Assembly (NCBI GenBank): GCA_964019335.1
Contig: OZ025719.1
Location: 1 to 64,000, forward strand
DNA length: 64,000 nucleotides
Direction of reading: 5' to 3'
Source: Diplonema japonicum
Lineage: Eukaryota; Protista; Euglenozoa: Diplonemea
Shown here piece after piece: positions 5,611-51,557 of the stretch. The notes beneath the pieces are model-generated. The model was given only the letters and a program-made list of their open reading frames with translations, was not told the origin of the DNA and did not search any database. The stretch's first letter is position 1. Every line of letters starts with the position of its first letter. The translations under genes were made by a program, and so were the position numbers.

Positions 5611-5700
5611 TTGTTACAAATATTTATCTTTCAAAAAAAAAAAGGATTTTTATAACTATATGCAACTTGTGTCGAGCAAAAAACTTTCGCAGCTTTTTAA
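5611..5700 (+). repeat. AT-rich foldback repeat, partial copy
   Basis: TTGTTACAAATATTTATCTTTC...TATAACTATATGCAACTTGTG..GAGCAAAAAACTTTCGCAGC shared with copies at 17284, 26029, 51833 (minus) and 56266. Confidence 0.8.
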
Positions 5701-6650
5701 ACTCCAAAGCGGTGGAGAGAGGGGTAAAGTTCTTTTTGGTATTCTTTTCACCAAAAGGTCTTGAGAAAAAAAAATAGTTTCGTGTAATGGGGAAGGGGGG
5801 GGGGGTAAATTATGGTGAAGAGAGTTAAAAAATTTGTAGAATGAATTTGTTGGGCCTCATATGAGGTTAGGCAAGCTATTCTGTAAATATAACCTTATCA
5901 AGAGGGGTGGGGGGGTGGCGATAACGGTGCGCATTTTTTAATTGTTAAAAAGGGGGGGAAGAAGAAGAAAACCGACACTGTCCAATGATGAGCAAAGAAG
6001 GCTGCAGGCTACCATGGATGGTGGAAAAAAAAAGTTGTGGGCTGAGTGCAATGAAAGAATGGGTAGGTTTTTTTTTTTTTTTTTATTATTACACACTTCC
6101 TTCCTTCAGAGCTTTTGTCGTCACCCTCCAGTGTTGCCCACTCTAGCTCTACTTTACACGATGCATATTGTCCTTTCCCCCCCTCCCCCCCTTTTTTTTA
6201 TCCCTCTTTTTCAGTGTCAACAAATTCAACCCCCTTTCATGCCTATGGGGATACTCTGGTTAAAAGAAGTCTTTATTTTATACTTCTTTTTTTTTATATG
6301 TTTTCCTTTCTTTGCAACCGTTGGTTTTTTTCTTTTTCTTTTTCTTCTTTTTATTTATAAAAAAAAAAACTCTCCTCCCTTTATTTCTTTTCTCTTCCCT
6401 CTCTCCCCCCCCTCTCTCTCTCTCTCTCTGTTTTTTTTTAACTATTGTAAAGTCAATTATATCATTGTCCTTCCCCCTTCTTCTCTCCGGGGGGGGGAGG
6501 TAATGATTAAAAGGTTTACAATACCCCCTCTTTTTGCTTTTTTTTTTCATAACAACTGTATATGTGTGTGTCTCTTCCCTCTTCTTCTCCTTATTCCCCC
6601 CTCTCCCAGCCGTCTAAAATGAATAACACAATAGTGGAGCGGGGGAAAAA

Positions 6651-16819: not shown

Positions 16820-16965
16820 GGTGGAGGGGGGGGGGTAACATCACCGGTAGCGCCCTATTGGAAGAACGTATTGCAGCTGCTCCGGGTTGACGAGCATTAG
16901 CGCAGCATCTTCTTAGTCAATACGGAATGCAGAAGAAACTTCAGATGGAATCAAGTAGGACAGTG
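16820..16965 (+). mobile_element. Ribozyme-SINE, degenerate copy 1
   Basis: CATCACCGGTAGCGCCC...GGAAGAACGTA...GCAGAAGAA...AATCAAGTAG colinear with 51229-51500, with deletions. Confidence 0.65.
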
Positions 16966-17007
16966 CTTATGCACTCTTTCGAGTTTTTTCTTCTTTTTTT
17001 TTATTCA

Positions 17008-17210
17008 GGTGGTGGGAATAACATGAAAATAAAAGCGCAGAATCTTGGTTACCCGGGACGCACCGGCTGGGGTTGAGCTGTACACCGCACGCATTAGGAC
17101 ACGACGCGGAACGCAGAAGAAGCTACAACTCGGCCGCGGCGCGCCCCCTGTAATCAAGTAGACAGTTCTTGTGCAGGCACCGCCAACACCGGCCTCCTTT
17201 AACTCATATA
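17008..17210 (+). mobile_element. Ribozyme-SINE copy 2 (ribozyme core deleted, tail type b)
   Basis: Starts GGTGGTGGGAATAACATG, jumps to GCGCAGAATCTTGG, ends CCTTTAACTCATATA followed by a T run. Confidence 0.85.
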
Positions 17211-17283
17211 TTTTTTTCTTCTTTCTCCCCGGTTCTGGTTCTTGTTTTTGGTTACTATCGCTTTTTTTTTTTTTTTTTTTTTT

Positions 17284-17417
17284 TTGTTACAAATATTTAT
17301 CTTTCAAAAAATGATTTTATAACTATATGCAACTTGTGCCGAGCAAAAAACTTTCGCAGCTTTTTAAAAATCTTTTTTGCTCGTGCGAACAACAAAGACA
17401 TATAGTCATAAAGAATT
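17284..17417 (+). repeat. AT-rich foldback repeat (MITE-like), complete copy
   Basis: Nested inverted arms TATAACTATATG/CATATAGTCATA and CGAGCAAAAAA/TTTTTTGCTCG; at least five copies in the window. Confidence 0.8.
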
Positions 17418-18651: not shown

Positions 18652-18794
18652 GGTGGTGGGGATAACACAGAAATATGGAAATCTAAAGAAGTACATCAGA
18701 TGTGTTGTTCGCTGTTGACCTCCTCGTCGGTCATCACCGGTAGCGCCCGAGTGGAAGAACGTAATGCAGATGCCCAGGGTGACGAACAGGCAGC
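18652..18794 (+). ncRNA. HDV-like self-cleaving ribozyme
   Basis: P1 GGTGGTG/CATCACC, P3 ACC/GGT, L3 TCCTCGTC, P1.1 GG, P4, J4/2 ACGAA, P2 GCTGTTG/CAGGCAGC. Confidence 0.8.
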
Positions 18795-18968
18795 AAGCTG
18801 CACGGGCTCAGAATCTTGGTTACCCGGGACACCCCGGCTGGGGCGCCATGGCTGGGGTTGAGTTGGACACCGCACGCATTAAGGACACGACGCGGAACGC
18901 AGAAGAAGCTACAACTAGGCCGAGGCGCGCCCCCTGTAATCAAGTAGACGATGCACCCTTAAATAGGC
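18652..18968 (+). mobile_element. Ribozyme-SINE copy 3 (intact ribozyme, tail type c)
   Basis: Near-identical to 51229-51500; flanked by T runs. Confidence 0.9.
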
Positions 18969-19643: not shown

Positions 19644-19681
19644 ACCAACGATTCTAAAGCTACAGTTTCTGTACTTTATTG
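19644..19681 (+). ncRNA. Spliced-leader (mini-exon) sequence, diplonemid type, at the 5' end of a retrotransposon
   Basis: ACCAACGATTCTAAAGCTACAGTTTCTGTACTTTATTG is 38 nt of the 39-nt euglenozoan SL, with the conserved CAGTTTCTGTACTTTATTG 3' half; only the first A is missing. Confidence 0.92.
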
Positions 19682-19936
19682 GTATCGACCGTGCCAATAA
19701 AGGAACCAGGTAGAACGGTTTGAAAAGAAAAAATATATTGACCAGACCACAACCGGATATATCCAAGCAAGTGTTTAGAAGTGACGACAATATCAGGAAG
19801 AAAAGAACAGTATAAATACGGTAACAGTGACAGTGAGAGTAATAGTGACAGTGACAGTGTAAGTGTAAGAAAGCGACCGACTCCGTCATCCCACAACCCC
19901 CTTTCCGTACTCCACTTCCCCCATCACGCTCTTAAC

Positions 19937-21559
19937 ATGGACCCCCATCAACTGGTCCAGAGAGCCCAGAGCCTGCTCGCAGGCGAACTATCCGAGGAGA
20001 ACAGAAGCCTCGTCCTGACCACCCTAGGCTGCATCCTGCAGCTGGTCGAGATGGCACAGAAGTCCTCACCCCAGCAGCCCACTCCGCTACAGGCCCAAGT
20101 TCAACAACAGCAATTCCAAAATTCCTCACCACAACCCCAACAATCGTACACGCAACAGCCGCCACTCAAGCAGCTCCAACAAGTTCATCAGCCCCAGAAA
20201 CAATTCCAACAACAACAGCAACAGGTTCAGCAGCAACAATACCAACAGCCTAAAGGACAACCGCACAAGCAGCAAGGCAAGAATAGTCAGCAGCCGCAAC
20301 CCACCGCCAAGTCGAACGAGAAGAGGACCCCGCCAAGGAAGGCTTCAAGAGGTAACACCAAGTCCTACCTTGGAGCCGCCACCAACTGGATGAGCAGACC
20401 GGGCCCCGCCAAACCCCCCTTAGCCCTGATCCAGCAGCACTGGGGAGATATGCAGATACACAACGCGCTCCCGGACAAACTCACGACAGGAATATATTTT
20501 AATCCCGCAGACCCTGTCCAACTCTCCGCACGCCTCAAGGCCCTCGGCCTGACTTTCAAAATCATCAGCACCCAACCATTCTCTGGTGGAACCGAGTCCG
20601 ACTCCCCAACCTCGAGGGGCATTATGAAAACCTGGGTCCTGGGGGACGAAGTACTACCGCAAGCCATGGACGCCCCTCCCAAGGACAGCAAAGGGACCGT
20701 TATCCTCAAGGCAGTGATTGCAAAGGACCATTGCTCAGCTGCACAGTGGAAGCGAACAGCGGACGGCAATGCCATTAAAAGAATGGCACTTCTAGCGGCG
20801 CGAGACAAGGAGGGTCCCTTCAAGGTAACCCCGCAAAACGTCTTCAGGATCAACCGCTCGACCGAGAACAACACCGCCTCTGCCCTGGTACGGGTGGACC
20901 CTGAGCACGCGATTAGACTGCTGGTCGCATCGGGAGACCAATGTGTATTCTGGACACACGCGTTCGCTGCAGACAGACTGGAGGTCATCCAGTTGAAGAA
21001 GGGGATCAAGGCGGCCGATGTCCCCACAGCATCAATAGGCACCTCACTCACGGTAACGCCGATCGGACTGGCCCTAATGCTACCGAGAGGAGCAGTCCGC
21101 AGCGAGGTACTGGCAAGGGTCAACCCCATACTTCTCCCGGCGCGGAAGGCTGGGGACAAATATATCCTGGAAGGGTGCCTCAGCTGGGAACACCCGTGTG
21201 ACTTGATGAACGACCTCGCAGGATGTGGATGGTCCATTAGCCACTTGGACAGACTAGAAGGTTCGAGATGGCTCGTTCGGGCCACCACCCCTCCCACCGC
21301 CAGGCTTATTGCGAGGGGGGAAAAACTTCATTCCCTGACGATTAGGGACTGGACACGGGAAGATGCACCAAACAAGAACGAGAGGAGCTTCCGGGGGAAA
21401 CAGCATAGGGTGAAGCTGTCGGAGGCAGAATTCCCCAGTTCAAGGGCGGCGCAGGAGAAAGCACAGGCGGAGGCTGCCAGGGCCGAGAGCTCACGGAAGA
21501 GGGGTGAATCGGAGACCCACGCACAGACGTCGCCGAGCCCCAAGAATCAAAAGATCTGA
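19937..21559 (+). CDS. Retrotransposon ORF1 (Gln-rich N-terminus, basic C-terminus)
   Basis: First ATG after the SL is 19937; long uninterrupted ORF upstream of the RT ORF. Confidence 0.8.
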   Translation: MDPHQLVQRAQSLLAGELSEENRSLVLTTLGCILQLVEMAQKSSPQQPTPLQAQVQQQQFQNSSPQPQQSYTQQPPLKQLQQVHQPQKQFQQQQQQVQQQQYQQPKGQPHKQQGKNSQQPQPTAKSNEKRTPPRKASRGNTKSYLGAATNWMSRPGPAKPPLALIQQHWGDMQIHNALPDKLTTGIYFNPADPVQLSARLKALGLTFKIISTQPFSGGTESDSPTSRGIMKTWVLGDEVLPQAMDAPPKDSKGTVILKAVIAKDHCSAAQWKRTADGNAIKRMALLAARDKEGPFKVTPQNVFRINRSTENNTASALVRVDPEHAIRLLVASGDQCVFWTHAFAADRLEVIQLKKGIKAADVPTASIGTSLTVTPIGLALMLPRGAVRSEVLARVNPILLPARKAGDKYILEGCLSWEHPCDLMNDLAGCGWSISHLDRLEGSRWLVRATTPPTARLIARGEKLHSLTIRDWTREDAPNKNERSFRGKQHRVKLSEAEFPSSRAAQEKAQAEAARAESSRKRGESETHAQTSPSPKNQKI

Positions 21560-21766
21560 CAGGAGGGTCTGAGGCATCTCGGGGAAATTCTATCCCTCCC
21601 CATCATCATCATTATTAGTCTATCAATCATTGACCTCCTAACCTTTTCGGCCACACCACGCCCCTTTGCCCCTCTCTCCTGCGACTGGTTCGGCTCCCCG
21701 ACCGAAAACAATCATCTGATCTACTCGTTGGCAATAATCCACCTCCCGCGGGCACATTTCCTCATT

Positions 21767-24700
21767 ATGAAAAGGTCGAAGCGGTCCATTGCGCGAGAAG
21801 CGAGGAAACGGCTCATGACACACGGTGACGTCCACCCCAATCCGGGGCCCGAGAAGGGGAAGAAGGAAATCACTATTATCTCTGTGAACGTGACGAACCT
21901 CCCAAATCAGCTGAACAGGGTCAAACTACAGGAGTTTGACGTGATTTGCCTGCAAGAGACCGCCCTTACGCAAGCGGGGCAATGGATGATGGACAAGGAA
22001 GCGAAGCAAGACGTTTTCCTAAAAGAACACCGTCTCTTTTGGGGACCCCCACAACAAGGGAAGGTGTCAAAAGGTGCAGAATCCCCCTCAATCGCCCAAA
22101 GAGGAGGCGTGGGAATTATGGTGAACAAGCAACTGACAGCTAAGAAGGAATCCTCCCTTTTCGAGGACCACAACACCAACTCGCGAAGGGTACATGTAAG
22201 AGTCGCGATTGGGAAACGTGACTGGTTACACATTATCACCCTCTACTGCCAGGTAAGCGACGGCTCCAGACACGCCAAGAGAAATAGGGAGGCGCTAATA
22301 TCCGACACCCTACAGAGATCGGCTCAGCTGGGGGACGTTCCGGTCATTGTGACAGGAGACTTCAACACGACGATAATGGACTCCCCGGTCCTCTCGCACG
22401 CCCTCTCTCAACATTGGACAGACGCTTCGAACAAAATATCGCGCCTACATGGAACACAAGCCCCTCCTACCTTCGTAACTGCAACAGCGAAGACGAGGCC
22501 AGACTACATCTTGGTGAACAAGACAGCTGCGATGGCGCTGACCGACTGCCAGACTCTGGACATTGGCGTACCCTCACACCGCGCACTAGTAATTAGAATC
22601 GATATGCCGAGATTCTACGAGCCCTCACTCCAGTACAGTATACCCAAGAAGATCATCCCTCTCCATGACTCCCGGAACCGCGCTCCGTACAGCGACATTC
22701 TCCCTACTTTGAGATCCCTGAAAGACAACGGGGACCTGGATGCAGCTTTCTTAGAGCTTTCTTCTGCTTGCGAGAAACACCTTTTGAGTGGAACGGCGCA
22801 GCTGGAGAATTCGATCTACTCTGGCAGAGGCGTGATTAATACCCCCAGCATGCGGAGGACGGCGGCTCCGTCTACGATGACAGCATTTGGGGCAGTCTCT
22901 AAAAAGTACCTAACACTTGAGAAAATCCGGCAGAGTGCAGCCGCTATTGTGCGGAGAGTCCCACTGTTGAAAGACCCGGCCCTGCCGTATGACCTACGCA
23001 AGAGCTGGGACAATATTAAGGCAAAGGCAATTAAGATCCTACGGTTCCACCCGGAAACCTTCTCCGAGGGTAACATCGTCAAGGAAGCAGACCTGATTCG
23101 GGAGAACGTTACGGCACGACAACGGAACATGGACATCGCTTCGAAGATCCTGCGCAACGTGAAGGCACGGAGGGATCTGAACTCGGGTTTCTCGGTGAAC
23201 CGGAGCGCGATTATGCAATTTGTGACGGACAAGCCAAATAGAGAGCTAGTTGCAGCAAACACGAACGGTACCCTCTCGACCTCAGTCGAAGAGATAGACC
23301 AAGCCTTCAGGTCGGCATGGCGCCACATCTTCCGCAAATACGAGGACCACCCTGAGCCGAGTTTTGATTCTTTTGAGGAAACTTTTGGGTCGCAGATCAC
23401 CCACCACCCCATGGTCGACCTCGCGATCACGCTAGAAGACCTGCGAAGAGTGCTGAGTAAGAAGGAGAAACAGGAATGCGCTGGGATTGATGGATGGAGG
23501 CTCTGCGAACTCGCCCACTTACCAGATGCCCTGCTAGAGGGATTCATCTTCCTATACAACTGGATTGAGGATGAGGGACGATGGCCAAAGGCAGTCCTGA
23601 CCGCGCTTGTTACGATGATCCCGAAAGGAGAATCCGAAGAGCCGCTAGATCACAGACCTATTACTGTATCGAGCGCATTCTATCGGCTCTGGGCTGGCGC
23701 ACGACTACCAGCCATCCTCGAATGGCAAGAGGAGTGGATTACTCCGCTCCAATTCGGCTTCAGACCGGAACACAGCACAGATGACCTCCTCGCGAAGGTC
23801 TGCACCAGTGTGGAGTTGGCAAAAGTATCTGGCAACCACCTTTGGGGTCTCTCGGTCGACTTCAAGAAATGCTTTGACTCTGTCCCCCACGCACTCACGT
23901 TCGAACTGGTCGATCGGTTAGGCCTAAGCCAGCTCATCCTGAGACCGATCAAGGCCATCTACTCTGACCTAATCCGCCGCCTACGTTTCCCCGTGGGAGT
24001 AGGTGCTCCATTCCGAACCACGAATGGAATACTCCAGGGATGCCCGATCTCGCCCGTTTTCATCAACGCAATCCTTGCCATCTTCACCAAGAAATGTACG
24101 GCAAATCCAAGAAACGCACACCCAGTGTCATATGCAGACGACCTTAACTTCACGTCAATTACCTCGGAGGCCGCGGTTCAGCGTTCCGTAAATCTACTAG
24201 GCAGCCTTTGCAAGCTCACGGGGATGACCGTACACCCGAAGAAGACCAGGTCATTTGGAACGAAACCCAAACACCGGGGGAATGTGAAGTTGAACGGAGA
24301 GACCTTTGCCACGACCAGTAGTCTGCAAATCTTAGGGGTACAAATCTACTTCCAGCCGAGCAGGAGGGATAACTCGAGGGTCCACAAAGCCCTGGCCGAA
24401 ATAGAACGCCTCGCCTCAACTAGGCTATACCACGATCGCAAGGTACGGATCATCGCAGAGAACATCCTGCCATCCGCCTTCTACGGCATCCTGTTCGACC
24501 CGATCCCGGACTCTTGGCTGGAGAAATTGAAGAAGCGGATCACTCTTTGCGTCTGGGGTGCCCGCAACCCAATGCGCTCCTCCAGCGCCCTGCTGGGAAT
24601 TGCCCATAAGGGACACACCCTGGACCCGTACTCTACTGCGATCTACAAGGCCATCTCTACTCTGGGACGACTTTGCACACGACATTCGAACAAGTCCCTT

Positions 24701-25939
24701 TTCATATCATGCTGGGAAGCGTACAGGAGAGCAAGGGATCAAGGCTCTCCATCATTTCCGATGGGACCATTTGCCAATGCAGACCTATGGCTCCGAGAAA
24801 TAGGGTCAAGGTGGAAGGACTTCCAGACGAAGATACGACCGCAAGGCAAACAGCTCCTGAAACACGAGATCAGGACGCTGCTGAAAGCCAAACTACGTGA
24901 GGATCTGGCCGAAGAGCGAGACACCTACCAGGGGGTCGAAACAGGCATTGACGAGGAGAAAACGAACTTCCTCCACAACGAGGTGACGACCACCAACCCA
25001 CAGAAAGCAAGGAGGATACTTTGTGCCATTGCGGGCGCGATGCTTCCCCTACACCCCAGAGCTTACGGCGACATGAACGGCTCACATACGAAATGCCTGG
25101 GGTGTGGCACACCATATAACATTGGGAACGGGACCAGCTCCCTACTACAACATACGATCTGGCAATGCCCAGCGCACGCCGACTGCAGAACGACCAACAC
25201 TGACCGCATTCGGCTGGTGCAAGACCACGTCAGCTGGCCAAGCTGCGCCCGACTACACGGCATTATTACCTCTGATATGGACATAAGCCTGACAAGTGTC
25301 AAGGAACTACACCTGATGTTTGCGGAAATTGCGGGGAAACTCGAGAGCCTGCACACCGAGAAGCAGGTCAGATACGACAATCTGCACTTCTGGAAAAGAC
25401 CATTCCAACCGGGAAACCTATTAGAACCGAAACCCCTCATTTGGTATCACAAGCACGGGCTGGGGAAGAAGTACTTCCCGGGGCTGATCCCGTTTGTCCT
25501 CAAATGGCTGAGTGCCCTGAAATGGGGCAAGGATGGAGGGCAAGTGTCCAAGGCGGAGCTTGCTGTCGACTTCATAGCAACGGAGAGAATCCACATGGGT
25601 GGTGAAGACCTGGCATGCTGGGCTAGGAAAATCGGAAGAATCCTCAACGTCCTGGACAGGGCACACAGAACAGGAACGGGGAATCACCTGATTCCAGCAG
25701 AAACTAAGAAGTCAGTACACTCACTGCGTACCCTGGGGCTCCACAGCCATTCCATCATTGGATACTCCACTCGTCCGGTCTTCGCGTCCCCGAAGGCAAC
25801 CCACCCGATCCTAGAGGAGCAACTGCGAACGCATTGCATCCTCAACAACTCGCTAGTCGGTTTCACGCCCAAGCTGCTGATGAGATACTACGACGGGCCT
25901 AAGGCACTACCACGACAGAAGGGATCAAACACTAGATGA
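21767..25939 (+). CDS. Retrotransposon ORF2: 2A-like peptide, AP endonuclease, reverse transcriptase, CCHC zinc knuckle
   Basis: DVHPNPGP; SVNV, CLQET, GDFN, RPDYIL, SHR (APE); HRPIT, QFGFRP, DFKKCFD, GILQGCPISP, YADD (RT); CLGC...HTIWQC. True start is uncertain because the frame is open back to the ORF1 stop. Confidence 0.93.
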   Translation: MKRSKRSIAREARKRLMTHGDVHPNPGPEKGKKEITIISVNVTNLPNQLNRVKLQEFDVICLQETALTQAGQWMMDKEAKQDVFLKEHRLFWGPPQQGKVSKGAESPSIAQRGGVGIMVNKQLTAKKESSLFEDHNTNSRRVHVRVAIGKRDWLHIITLYCQVSDGSRHAKRNREALISDTLQRSAQLGDVPVIVTGDFNTTIMDSPVLSHALSQHWTDASNKISRLHGTQAPPTFVTATAKTRPDYILVNKTAAMALTDCQTLDIGVPSHRALVIRIDMPRFYEPSLQYSIPKKIIPLHDSRNRAPYSDILPTLRSLKDNGDLDAAFLELSSACEKHLLSGTAQLENSIYSGRGVINTPSMRRTAAPSTMTAFGAVSKKYLTLEKIRQSAAAIVRRVPLLKDPALPYDLRKSWDNIKAKAIKILRFHPETFSEGNIVKEADLIRENVTARQRNMDIASKILRNVKARRDLNSGFSVNRSAIMQFVTDKPNRELVAANTNGTLSTSVEEIDQAFRSAWRHIFRKYEDHPEPSFDSFEETFGSQITHHPMVDLAITLEDLRRVLSKKEKQECAGIDGWRLCELAHLPDALLEGFIFLYNWIEDEGRWPKAVLTALVTMIPKGESEEPLDHRPITVSSAFYRLWAGARLPAILEWQEEWITPLQFGFRPEHSTDDLLAKVCTSVELAKVSGNHLWGLSVDFKKCFDSVPHALTFELVDRLGLSQLILRPIKAIYSDLIRRLRFPVGVGAPFRTTNGILQGCPISPVFINAILAIFTKKCTANPRNAHPVSYADDLNFTSITSEAAVQRSVNLLGSLCKLTGMTVHPKKTRSFGTKPKHRGNVKLNGETFATTSSLQILGVQIYFQPSRRDNSRVHKALAEIERLASTRLYHDRKVRIIAENILPSAFYGILFDPIPDSWLEKLKKRITLCVWGARNPMRSSSALLGIAHKGHTLDPYSTAIYKAISTLGRLCTRHSNKSLFISCWEAYRRARDQGSPSFPMGPFANADLWLREIGSRWKDFQTKIRPQGKQLLKHEIRTLLKAKLREDLAEERDTYQGVETGIDEEKTNFLHNEVTTTNPQKARRILCAIAGAMLPLHPRAYGDMNGSHTKCLGCGTPYNIGNGTSSLLQHTIWQCPAHADCRTTNTDRIRLVQDHVSWPSCARLHGIITSDMDISLTSVKELHLMFAEIAGKLESLHTEKQVRYDNLHFWKRPFQPGNLLEPKPLIWYHKHGLGKKYFPGLIPFVLKWLSALKWGKDGGQVSKAELAVDFIATERIHMGGEDLACWARKIGRILNVLDRAHRTGTGNHLIPAETKKSVHSLRTLGLHSHSIIGYSTRPVFASPKATHPILEEQLRTHCILNNSLVGFTPKLLMRYYDGPKALPRQKGSNTR

Positions 25940-26028
25940 GTTGATTGTCGTTAGGCGATCCTGTCACATACTGCAGGTTCCCTTCAAAGACACCTTTTTT
26001 TTGTGTTTGGTTTTTGTTTGGTTTTTTC

Positions 26029-26115
26029 TTGTTACAAATATTTATCTTTCAAAAAAAAAAAAAAAGATTTTTTTTTTTTTTTTATAAAGCTACATGCAAC
26101 TTGTGCCGAGCAAAA
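26029..26115 (+). repeat. AT-rich foldback repeat, partial copy
   Basis: Matches 17284-17350. Confidence 0.75.
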
Positions 26116-26546: not shown

Positions 26547-26836
26547 GGTGGGGATAACATGAGCATATAGGAAAAAACACCAGACTCGTCGGTCATCACC
26601 GGTAGCGCCCGAGTGGAAGAACATGATGCAGATGCTCAGGGTGACGAACAGGCAGCAAACTGCACGAGCGCAGAATCTTGGTTACCCGGGACGCCCCGGC
26701 TTGGGTTGAGCTGTACACCGCACGCGGCGCGGAACGCAGAAAAAGCTGCAACCCGGCTGCGGTGCGCCCCCTGTAATCAAGTAGACAGTTCTTGTGCAGG
26801 GCGCCGCCAACACCGGCCTCCTTTAACTCATATATA
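26547..26836 (+). mobile_element. Ribozyme-SINE copy 4 (P2/P3 5' strands deleted, tail type b)
   Basis: Colinear with the other copies; T-run flanks. Confidence 0.88.
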
Positions 26837-46377: not shown

Positions 46378-46696
46378 GGTGGTGGGGATAACATGGAAAT
46401 ATAAGAAGTACATCAGATGTGTTGTTCGCTGTTGACCTCCTCGTCGGTCATCACCGATAGCGCCCGAGTGGAAGAACGTATCGCAGATGCTCAGGCGAAC
46501 AGGCAGCAAACTGCACGAGCGCAGAATCTTGGTTACCCGGGACGCCCCGGCTAGGGTTGAGCACACCGCATGCATTAAGGACACGACGCGGAACGCAGAA
46601 GAAGCTACTGCTCGGCCGAGGAGCGCCCCCTGTAATCAAGTAGGTAGTTCGTGCTTCATTGCACGCTTAACGCCACCTAGTGTTGCAATCAAAGCC

Positions 46697-46699
<3 letters not shown>
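46378..46699 (+). mobile_element. Ribozyme-SINE copy 5 (P1.1 GG>GA, small P4 deletion, tail type a)
   Basis: Near-identical to 51229-51557; T runs on both sides. Confidence 0.9.
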
Positions 46700-50004: not shown

Positions 50005-50892
50005 ATGTCAGGAGGAGAAACAGTAAAAGCAGCTTCGCCCCCTAACGTAGAGGAGCTGTTTACAAAGGTAAAATGCGAATCTGGCAACAGCGGTCTGACA
50101 CTCGATGAGTATGCGTTGGCCGTGCACGCTGTTCTCCTCAAGGAAGGCTACGAGCCTACAGACAAAGAACACAAAACCCTGGACCACAACAAAACGATCC
50201 CCGAGAACTGGAAAACCAGCGAAGAAACCTATTGCTTCCACTACAGGCACGAAAGGTCCTGCCTCAAGTACATTGTTAAGATAATATCCATCGGAGGGAA
50301 AGTGGTGGCCCTGCTGGCAGACGACCAGGAAACCAGCAAGGTCACGCAGGCTGTCTACCCTTTAAAACCCACTTGCAACCTAGCAGACGTGACCTCAGCA
50401 TCTGTGACACTCACTCTCCCCTTTGGTGTGCCGACACCCCACGCACCGCCTCAGGTGAACCAGCCTGTTTTCTTTAAACCAGCTGTTCCTACCCAAACCC
50501 CAATTTACCGCCAGCCTGAGTCCCGCGACCCTTTGCGTGACTATGGTCGTGGTGACCTTACTCCTGGTGGCGGTCCTGGGGGGAACTTAATGGGCCCAGA
50601 AGCTTTTAGGGGAGACCCTCGGGACAGGTACGGGGCGTTAGGGCCGGATGGTAATGTATGTTTGAAATGGGAAAAAAAAAGGAAAAAAAAAAAAAAAAAA
50701 AAAACACAGTTCTACCCGCCACCTAATGGTGCTCGCTTCGACCCTATTGCGCCCCATTCTTCATTCGGGGGTGAGCCGGACAATGATTTGACACCTTACA
50801 TGATGCCAGGTGCGAATAATCCTCCAGGGTTTAAACCGTTTGGGTTCGGTGGTGGTGGTGGTGGTGGTGGCCCCCCCGGGATGTTCATGTGA
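50005..50892 (+). CDS. PSMF1: Proteasome inhibitor PI31-like protein (intron 50656-50709)
   Basis: FP domain (VHAVLL, IPENW, YCFHYRH), GRGDLTP, GGNLMGP, PNGARFDPIAP, GEPDND and a C-terminal MFM. Confidence 0.88.
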   Translation: MSGGETVKAASPPNVEELFTKVKCESGNSGLTLDEYALAVHAVLLKEGYEPTDKEHKTLDHNKTIPENWKTSEETYCFHYRHERSCLKYIVKIISIGGKVVALLADDQETSKVTQAVYPLKPTCNLADVTSASVTLTLPFGVPTPHAPPQVNQPVFFKPAVPTQTPIYRQPESRDPLRDYGRGDLTPGGGPGGNLMGPEAFRGDPRDRYGALGPDGNVCLKWEKKRKKKKKKKTQFYPPPNGARFDPIAPHSSFGGEPDNDLTPYMMPGANNPPGFKPFGFGGGGGGGGPPGMFM

Positions 50893-50919: not shown

Positions 50920-51214
50920 GGTGGTGGGGATAACATGAAAATATAAGAAAAACATCAGATGTGTTGTTCGCTGTTGACCTCCTTGTCGGTCATCACCGTT
51001 GAACGTAACGCAGATGCTCAGGGTGACGAACAGGCAGTAAACTGCGCGAGCGCAGAATCTTGGTTACCGGGTCGCCCCGGCTTGGGTTGAGCTGCACACT
51101 GCATGCATTAAGGACACAACGAGGAACGCAGAAGAAGCTACAACTCGGCCGCGGTGAGTACGACAGTTCTTGTGCAGGGCGCCGCCAACACCGGCCTCCT
51201 TTAACTCTTATATA
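50920..51214 (+). mobile_element. Ribozyme-SINE copy 6 (P1.1/P4 damaged, tail type b)
   Basis: Colinear with copy 7; deletion after CATCACCG. Confidence 0.9.
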
Positions 51215-51228
51215 TTTTTATTGGTTAA

Positions 51229-51362
51229 GGTGGTGGGGATAACATGTAAATATAAGAAGTACATCAGATGTGTTGTTCGCTGTTGACCTCCTCGTCGGTC
51301 ATCACCGGTAGCGCCCGAGTGGAAGAACGTAACGCAGATGCTCAGGGTGACGAACAGGCAGC
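51229..51362 (+). ncRNA. HDV-like self-cleaving ribozyme
   Basis: P1 51229-35/51300-06; P2 51279-85/51355-62; P3 51286-88/51297-99; L3 TCCTCGTC 51289-96; P1.1 GG 51307-08; P4 51312-20/51340-49; catalytic-C equivalent at 51351 in CGAA. Confidence 0.82.
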
Positions 51363-51557
51363 AAACCGCACGAGCGCAGAATCTTGGTTACCCGGGACGC
51401 CCCGGCTGGGGTTGAGCTGTACACCGCACGCATTAAGGACACGACGCGGAACGCAGAAGAAGCTACTGCTCGGCCGAGGAGCGCCCCCTGTAATCAAGTA
51501 GGTAGTTCGTGCTTCATTGCACGCTTAACGCCACCTAGTGTTGCAATCAAAGCCCCA
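51229..51557 (+). mobile_element. Ribozyme-SINE copy 7 (intact, tail type a)
   Basis: Most complete copy, in tandem with copy 6; ends AAAGCCCCA followed by a T-rich run. Confidence 0.92.

Follow-up and report, generated by a model that had tools for sequence, protein, structure and literature searches.

A predicted hepatitis delta virus-like ribozyme heading a SINE-like retroposon family in the diplonemid Diplonema japonicum

Introduction

The genome of the diplonemid Diplonema japonicum harbors a short interspersed element (SINE)-like family, a dispersed, recently active, non-coding retroposon of ~330 bp that is flanked by target-site duplications (TSDs) and is present in about 700-1400 copies. 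The first 134 nt of this element combine every feature that can be required, at the level of sequence, of a hepatitis delta virus (HDV)-like ribozyme, and the cleavage site is predicted to lie at the first base of the element. Seven copies are found in the window, the whole stretch of DNA analyzed here (64,000 nucleotides, contig OZ025719.1 positions 1-64,000), and the copy that begins at position 51229 serves as the reference. We consider it rather likely, with a probability of about 0.7, that the head is a functional ribozyme that sets the 5' end of the element. The element probably excises itself from host transcripts and is recopied by enzymes borrowed from long interspersed elements (LINEs).

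The release of retroposon RNA by a ribozyme is already established in R2 and in the L1Tc/NARTc/SIDER elements, and it is the lineage and the arrangement that are new here. New in the build are the joining of a predicted ribozyme head and a body to swappable LINE tails, insertion into T tracts, and the lack of poly(A). The trypanosomatid elements L1Tc, NARTc, ingi and SIDER carry HDV-like ribozymes with the Pr77 hallmark at their 5' end, and cleavage occurs at +1 (PMC3185411, PMC4035085). According to the passages cited, the 5' HDV-like ribozyme of R2 frees the element RNA from the host co-transcript and is kept in short internally deleted elements (SIDEs) such as R2Dwi_SIDE (PMC3774820, PMC4035085). 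In drz-Agam-2-1, from a mosquito RTE-type element, a helix (P1.2) in the segment joining P1 and P2 (J1/2) speeds cleavage by holding these two helices together (PMC4908430). Transposable elements were left uncurated in the Diplonema papillatum genome paper. No description of an HDV-like ribozyme in diplonemids was found in the literature searched, in keeping with the original prediction, made from the letters of the window, which proposed that such a ribozyme heads this family and knew of none described in that group.

Results

The element begins with the parts of an HDV-like ribozyme

In the element numbering, G51229 is position 1 (G1) and the predicted ribozyme comprises the first 134 nt. 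Its parts are listed below with element positions in brackets; RF00094 is the HDV ribozyme family of Rfam, and MFE stands for minimum free energy.

51229-51235 (1-7), + strand: P1 5' strand, GGUGGUG, pairing 7/7 with 51300-51306; predicted cleavage just 5' of G51229
51236-51278, + strand: J1/2, a P1.2-like hairpin with stem 51237-47/51268-78 (9-19/40-50) and a 20-nt loop; in the MFE fold
51279-51285 (51-57), + strand: P2 5' strand, GCUGUUG, pairing with 51355-51362 in 7 bp with one bulged G; in the MFE fold
51286-88/51297-99 (58-60/69-71), + strand: P3, ACC/GGU, enclosing L3; aligns to the P3-L3 block of RF00094
51289-51296 (61-68), + strand: L3, UCCUCGUC, whose CC faces GG (P1.1)
51300-51306 (72-78), + strand: P1 3' strand, CAUCACC, 7/7 including one G-U
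51307-51308 (79-80), + strand: GG, able to pair with the CC of L3 (P1.1)
51312-19/51341-49 (84-91/113-121), loop 51320-40, + strand: P4, 8 bp with one bulged A; in the MFE fold
51351-51354, + strand: J4/2, CGAA, directly before the P2 3' strand; C51351 (C123) is the candidate catalytic cytosine
51355-51362 (127-134), + strand: P2 3' strand, CAGGCAGC, end of the predicted ribozyme

The J1/2 hairpin closes directly between P1 and P2, and the strand order of P1, P2, P3, P1.1 and P4 is that of the canonical nested double pseudoknot. Every helix named in the original prediction was thus found at 51229-51362; as judged by a strict descriptor, only two of the seven window copies, those at 51229 and 18652, have an intact head. 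The J1/2 hairpin, P2 and P4 also come out of nested MFE folding.

The core was also searched for with a general HDV descriptor that is independent of the family sequence. It asked for a P1 that begins with G and pairs 7/7, a P3 of 3 bp including two or more G/C, a 7-9-nt L3 in which positions 2-3 are CC, the GG, a CNRA motif, and a P2 of at least 5 bp with one bulge allowed. In 337 kb of genomic sequence this descriptor matched 33 copies of the family and a single site outside it, and it gave 0 matches in 1.35 Mb of shuffles of the examined loci. Markov-1 random sequence (170 Mb) yielded 272 matches, or 1.6e-6 per position (1.6 per Mb), so that chance is very unlikely to place a match exactly on the edge of a repeat family. 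At the same rate ~200 random matches are expected genome-wide, and the descriptor alone is therefore no proof.

Two recurrent matches with a UCCUCG L3 elsewhere in the genome, one in the coding 5' region of another element and one at an antisense LINE site, were rejected as ribozymes. A further repeat family, seen at loci L056-L058 (C18:489950, C64:105850, C5:507850), starts with GGGGGTTACTGGGTAAAC after a T tract and one A. Its open reading frame (ORF) opens at an ATG ~45 nt in, and its CCTCCTCGGAGG fits the L3 pattern yet is coding, with no ribozyme.

A search with an HDV model, which had been proposed as a check on the original prediction, gave a match to HDV, but a weak one. Over the window no Rfam family reached its gathering score, and a 621-nt query returned nothing useful. 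With a 147-nt stretch, RF00094 (HDV_ribozyme) was the only match among 4227 families, at 13.6 bits and E = 7.1, which is below the gathering score and not significant. In this alignment the P3-L3-P3', P4 and J4/2-P2 blocks are placed correctly; the 5' strand of P1 is placed wrongly because the model is unable to span the 43-nt J1/2.

The family is abundant and its copies keep one strand over long blocks

All seven of the copies claimed for the window were recovered with blastn and MAFFT, every one on the + strand.

51229-51557, + strand: tail A; head intact, passes the strict HDV descriptor
18652-18968, + strand: subfamily C, with a 9-nt insertion in the J1/2 loop and a shortened tail C; head passes the descriptor
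46378-46699, + strand: tail A; ribozyme damaged, with GG changed to GA and 4 nt missing before CGAA
50920-51213, + strand: tail B; C to U in L3 and a 15-nt deletion in P4
26547-26835, + strand: tail B; start shortened; lacks P2, the 5' strand of P3 and some of L3 by deletion
17008-17211, + strand: tail B; internal deletion of element positions ~29-144
~16820-16981, + strand: decayed, rearranged family fragment with an altered start
51363-51496, + strand: non-coding body of the reference copy, common to all subfamilies; no Rfam family, no tRNA

The GGTGGTG start is, as had been claimed, shortened in one copy (26547) and altered in another (16820), and core parts of the ribozyme are missing from the copies at 26547, 17008 and 16820.

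The assembly searched comprises 62.5 Mb in 132 contigs. A first look with a 272-nt query gave 1421 candidates, the best 40 of which scored 97-100% identical. A 30-nt core pattern spanning P2 through GG, with up to 3 mismatches, was found in 763 genomic copies (reversed control, 0), and a 19-nt body motif occurs exactly 676 times. In the genome list of this body motif, copy strand is constant over long blocks along the contigs, as would be seen if insertions kept to the orientation of polycistronic gene clusters; in the window, the large ORFs and the repeat copies all lie on the + strand. The stop codon of ORF 50005-50892 lies 28 nt ahead of the copy at 50920, with the copy at 51229 in tandem behind it. 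An active ribozyme at a site of the 50920 type would cut the 3' untranslated region (UTR) of the upstream gene.

Relatives were also sought in metagenomes. A transition-tolerant core pattern matched 111 stretches, none with P1, P2 and CGAA in place, and these were rejected since all look like random GC-rich bacterial sequence.

Homology begins at the predicted cleavage site

At 27 independent loci the homology between copies begins at G1 (GGTGGTG), and the upstream flank is T-rich and unrelated from locus to locus. The claim that homology starts at the predicted cleavage site is thus borne out, with 0-3 extra bases upstream of G1. Between the flank and G1 there are 0, 1, 2 and 3 A's in 6, 9, 7 and 5 loci, respectively; an A stands at -1 in 21 loci, and the remaining ones have G (3), T (2) or C (1) there. 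Extra A's also precede the G-rich start of two LINE-like families that have no ribozyme, and we therefore read them as a property of integration rather than of the RNA start.

At the other end the element terminates in ...CAATCAAAGCCCCA and a T tract follows. Where the T tract is other than a pure homopolymer, clear TSDs can be read on both sides, as at loci L007 (TATCTTTT) and L014 (TTTCTTTTTTT), with no tail between the end of the element and the duplication. The T tracts accordingly come from the target; the extra A's are part of what was inserted. Poly(A) is absent from tails A-D; one shortened copy, L064, ends in an A run. The T-tract insertion pattern suggests that the bottom strand is nicked at A runs.

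The LINEs and SINEs of this genome share a common manner of insertion: they have no poly(A), lie in sense orientation in T tracts, are flanked by T-rich TSDs, and show 0-5 extra A's at the 5' junction. A short repeat, GTTACAAATATTTATCTTTCAAAAAA...TATAACTATATGCAACTTGTG..CGAGCAAA, is located directly after T tracts, often beside SINE or LINE ends. It is present in the window at 5612-5701, 17285-17368 and 26030-26110, and in the downstream flank of locus L021.

Two 3' tails are shared with LINEs and the head apparently is not

The subfamilies have a common head and body and differ in the last 50-60 nt. The features that bear on these tails in the window are as follows.

51497-51557, + strand: tail A of the reference copy, ending ...CAAUCAAAGCCCCA; the target T tract follows
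19646-25994, + strand: LINE with ORFs 19781-21559 and 21728-25939
25959-25994, + strand: 3' end of this LINE, which has apurinic/apyrimidinic endonuclease (APE) and reverse transcriptase (RT) domains; matches SINE tail C

Tail B, which ends in TCCTTTAACTCATATAT, is identical to the last 17 nt (17/17) of a LINE family with a single ORF of 2036-2185 aa (loci L053-L055), in the sense of the ORF and with a T tract next. Tail C and the 3' end of the window LINE share a 35-nt local match with a score of 48 (maximum of 25 in 500 shuffles), again in the ORF sense. Both partner LINEs carry the Pfam domains Exo_endo_phos and RVT_1. The ORF sense of these two tail matches makes the + strand the RNA sense and places the ribozyme-like part at the 5' end. 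No LINE partners of tails A and D were found, and a pattern search with tail A gave only deleted or truncated SINE copies. With its TSDs, high copy number, lack of coding capacity and LINE-derived 3' ends, the element is a non-autonomous retroposon, as originally proposed.

The head shows no such relationship. The last 14 nt of the predicted ribozyme precede sequence other than the SINE body at only three places in the genome, two of which are plainly small deletions. Among 14 LINE 5' regions, no blastn similarity to the head and no convincing descriptor match was found (2 loose matches, against ~1 expected). At their 5' ends the partner LINEs have (A)nGGGGCTGG... or a spliced leader (SL) exon, unlike the SINE. 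The head was thus apparently not borrowed from any LINE in this genome, as far as these comparisons indicate. That the element is a deletion derivative of a partner LINE, of the SIDE or NARTc type, was considered and rejected, as the 5' ends of the two identified partners differ from that of the SINE and none of the 14 LINE 5' regions compared has blastn similarity to it.

The predicted ribozyme core is invariant between subfamilies

Covariation across P1-P4 among genome-wide copies, which had been suggested as a check, did not materialize: none was seen in 38 pairs among 36 distinct heads, which are too similar. Across 42 heads (36 distinct), 96% of pair cells pair, and both P1.1 pairs are retained in 31-34 of the 36 distinct copies. 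Differences between subfamily consensus sequences are more telling than differences between copies, because they reflect changes in source copies.

Subfamilies A, C and D were compared, with the core defined as P1, P2, P3, L3 minus its position 4, GG and CGAA (48 positions). None of the 48 core positions varies between subfamilies, as against 21 of 219 elsewhere (Fisher p = 0.018) or 13 of 133 in the body alone (p = 0.022). The J4/2 CGAA, including C51351, is constant in every subfamily consensus, and position 4, which is U, A or C depending on the subfamily, is the only L3 position that varies. All four stem substitutions between subfamilies keep pairing. Subfamily C has C-G and A-U in place of two adjacent G-U wobbles in the J1/2 hairpin. 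In P4 of subfamily D, G89 is changed to A and A116 to U, such that a G89-C115 pair with A116 bulged is replaced by an A89-U116 pair with C115 bulged and 8 bp are kept. Insertions and deletions are located in loops (+9 nt in the J1/2 loop of C, +1 nt in that of D, and -6 nt in the P4 loop of D), and the head variants shared within subfamily A are confined to the J1/2 loop and the P2 bulge. Sequence change thus supports the helices through the peripheral stems and the constancy of the core. These comparisons constitute modest yet consistent evidence that source copies are held to the fold.

Some copies carry a spliced leader

An SL exon ending in CAGTTTCTGTACTTTATTG is found at 19646-19683, at the start of the window LINE and downstream of a T tract. 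Among the SINE copies, the full SL exon is fused to G1 at loci L012 and L029 and to G2 at L063 (97-140), at independent insertion sites. These SL-fused retrocopies indicate that some element RNAs underwent trans-splicing before they were retrotransposed, with the AG behind the T tract, made up of A(-1) and G1, as the acceptor; this places the element in precursor RNA made by RNA polymerase II (Pol II). Since most copies lack the SL, the usual template has a different 5' end, one that falls at the predicted cleavage site. A second APE- and RT-encoding LINE, at L053 (~980-1020), also starts with a full SL exon, and in both LINEs GT follows the SL; these SL-headed LINEs arose either by retrocopying of trans-spliced LINE RNA or by capture of part of an SL RNA gene.

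Logan assembled contigs of four sequencing runs, none of them on record as RNA, were compared with 5,901 letters. The SL-G2 junction is also present in contigs of runs X1 and X2, and an SL-like loose end in X1 differs in its middle part. X1 and X2 are from related organisms, with gene contigs ~3-4% different from the window, and the element is present in both. The ratio of SINE to gene depth suggests that X1, X2 and X9 are DNA.

Discussion

We propose that the element, of ~330 bp, consists of a 134-nt HDV-like ribozyme, a non-coding body, and an exchangeable tail derived from the 3' ends of APE- and RT-encoding LINEs. Copies that lie in T tracts in the sense of the gene block would be read through by Pol II within polycistronic transcripts. 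The nested double pseudoknot is predicted to cut 5' of G1, releasing an RNA that starts with the first base of the element. The identity of the tail suggests that it would recruit the RT and endonuclease of the matching LINE, and target-primed reverse transcription into a new T tract would then yield a copy with a T-rich TSD, no poly(A) and 0-3 extra 5' bases, all of which are seen in the anatomy of the copies. As a side route, some element RNAs would be trans-spliced at A(-1)G1 instead, giving the SL-fused retrocopies that are present as DNA copies.

Several observations weigh against a functional ribozyme at the 5' end. In most copies an additional A precedes G1, and a clean 5'-OH end at that base does not by itself account for it. 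G1 pairs with C; in HDV and CPEB3, the pair at the position of G1 is a G-U wobble. The RF00094 score of 13.6 bits is far under the gathering score of 50, and the stability of the nested fold is not above that of shuffles (z = +1.0). No double-sided change was found in the 38 pairs across the 42 heads (36 distinct), the copies being too alike. The partner LINEs do without a ribozyme, and the SINE-to-gene depth ratios in the Logan contigs, ~2000 in X1 and ~4000 in X9, are those of DNA-like copy number.

An unlikely alternative, though the best of those considered, is that the head is a catalytically dead look-alike and that the RNA starts at or near G1 from an internal promoter, either of the RNA polymerase III (Pol III) type or a Pr77-like Pol II promoter, with the head acting as promoter or binding a protein. 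In 21 of 27 copies the -1 position holds an A, possibly the initiating purine; the extra bases, however, number anywhere from 0 to 3 and are not always A. The T runs past the element resemble Pol III terminators, yet at L007 and L014 they are TSDs rather than element sequence, and LINEs of 6-7 kb have the same ends. The insignificant Rfam score and the lack of covariation in the core helices count in favor of this alternative, whereas the absence of tRNA, 5S or 7SL similarity and of any Rfam family at gathering score counts against it, as does the improbability of a full HDV core falling by chance at the exact boundary (~1e-6 per position). A promoter and a ribozyme are, moreover, able to coexist, as they do in the Pr77 of L1Tc (PMC3383444).

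Less probable still is that the 5' end is made by SL trans-splicing at A(-1)G1, the head being a structured leader that serves stability or the binding of LINE proteins. An AG behind a T tract is what an acceptor site usually looks like, and the SL is indeed joined to G1 at L012 and L029 and to G2 at L063 and in contigs of X1 and X2. However, the SL is present on only 3 of the ~45 copies examined that have a 5' end, and nearly all would be expected to bear it if the template were trans-spliced; the full HDV core and its invariance between subfamilies would also be left without explanation. Finally, the direct or nearly direct contact of a T run with G1 in almost all copies might mean that the RNA sense is the - strand, the T tract a reversed poly(A) and the head the 3' end, a very improbable reading that is contradicted by the match of tails B and C to LINE 3' ends in the ORF sense with T tracts on the same strand, by unrelated bases between T run and G1 in several copies (L011, L024), by T-rich TSDs at both ends, and by SL exons fused in the + sense.

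A self-cleaving head, the reading that we favor, would have close counterparts in known systems. Like the trypanosomatid elements, this one resides in a euglenozoan host with polycistronic Pol II transcription and SL trans-splicing, and its copies lie between genes and in 3' UTRs. It shares with L1Tc, NARTc and SIDER an HDV-like head on the first nucleotides of non-LTR retroposons, short non-autonomous ones included. The head differs from Pr77 in its length (134 nt as compared with 77-79 nt), in its structured J1/2 of 43 nt and in its long P4, distinctions that are drawn from architecture and not from alignment. The element further differs from its trypanosomatid counterparts in that apparently no LINE of the genome carries the head, tails are swapped, poly(A) is lacking, and insertion is into T tracts. 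With R2 and its SIDEs it has in common a 5' HDV-like ribozyme, of predicted cleavage here, in a non-autonomous element. R2 is site-specific in 28S rDNA and uses a restriction-like endonuclease, whereas the partners here are APE-type LINEs and insertion is dispersed; R2 SIDEs are deletion derivatives with both ends of the parent, whereas the head here is not that of the partner.

In its stable J1/2 helix, which closes directly between P1 and P2, the predicted ribozyme resembles drz-Agam-2-1, although sequence and host are unrelated. The strand order, the 7-bp P1, the 3-bp P3, the 8-nt L3 starting UCCUCG, the GG, and the C-G-A-A before the P2 3' strand are those of genomic HDV (RF00094), from which the head is distinguished by the pairing of G1 with C rather than U, the 43-nt J1/2, the longer P4, and the 13.6 bits against a gathering score of 50.

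In possessing three modules, a LINE-borrowed tail, partner-specific subfamily tails and a high copy number, the element is like classical SINEs. The head has no tRNA (ARAGORN), 5S or 7SL likeness, and no relevant Rfam family was found at E up to 10. Lacking a head of the Pol III type, the element is not a classical SINE; a predicted self-cleaving ribozyme takes the place of the Pol III promoter. It is conceivable, and we suggest it tentatively, that such elements constitute a 'ribozyme-SINE' class in which an HDV-like ribozyme shared with no LINE replaces the Pol III promoter, tails are swappable, copies lie in T tracts close behind stop codons, transcription is by Pol II read-through, and activity continues at present.

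If the head cleaves, it would be the first HDV-like ribozyme reported in diplonemids, and ribozyme-processed retroposons would extend from the trypanosomatids to their sister lineage, with a different build. The ribozyme would then be a portable 5' module of a SINE-like element in a setting where Pol II reads through everything, and the subfamilies would provide a natural set for the exchange of 3' tails between LINE partners. With intact ribozymes in the hundreds, cleavage of host 3' UTRs and of intergenic RNA would influence the fate of mRNAs genome-wide; such cleavage by near-identical, gene-adjacent, possibly active ribozymes may be comparable to the role of SIDER2 in Leishmania. With its stable J1/2 helix, the predicted ribozyme would also lend itself to testing the 'pinch' model of large HDV-like ribozymes.

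Two types of repeat deserve separate mention. Old, CpG-decayed fragments of the SINE body at L062, L072 and L080 lie inside a composite repeat of short CCGGTC/CCGGAC-type units and inverted copies of the body motif. In the window, two further local direct repeats are unrelated to the SINE, one at 56126-56219/56384-56477 (83%) and the other at 27823-27909/29739-29825 (82%).

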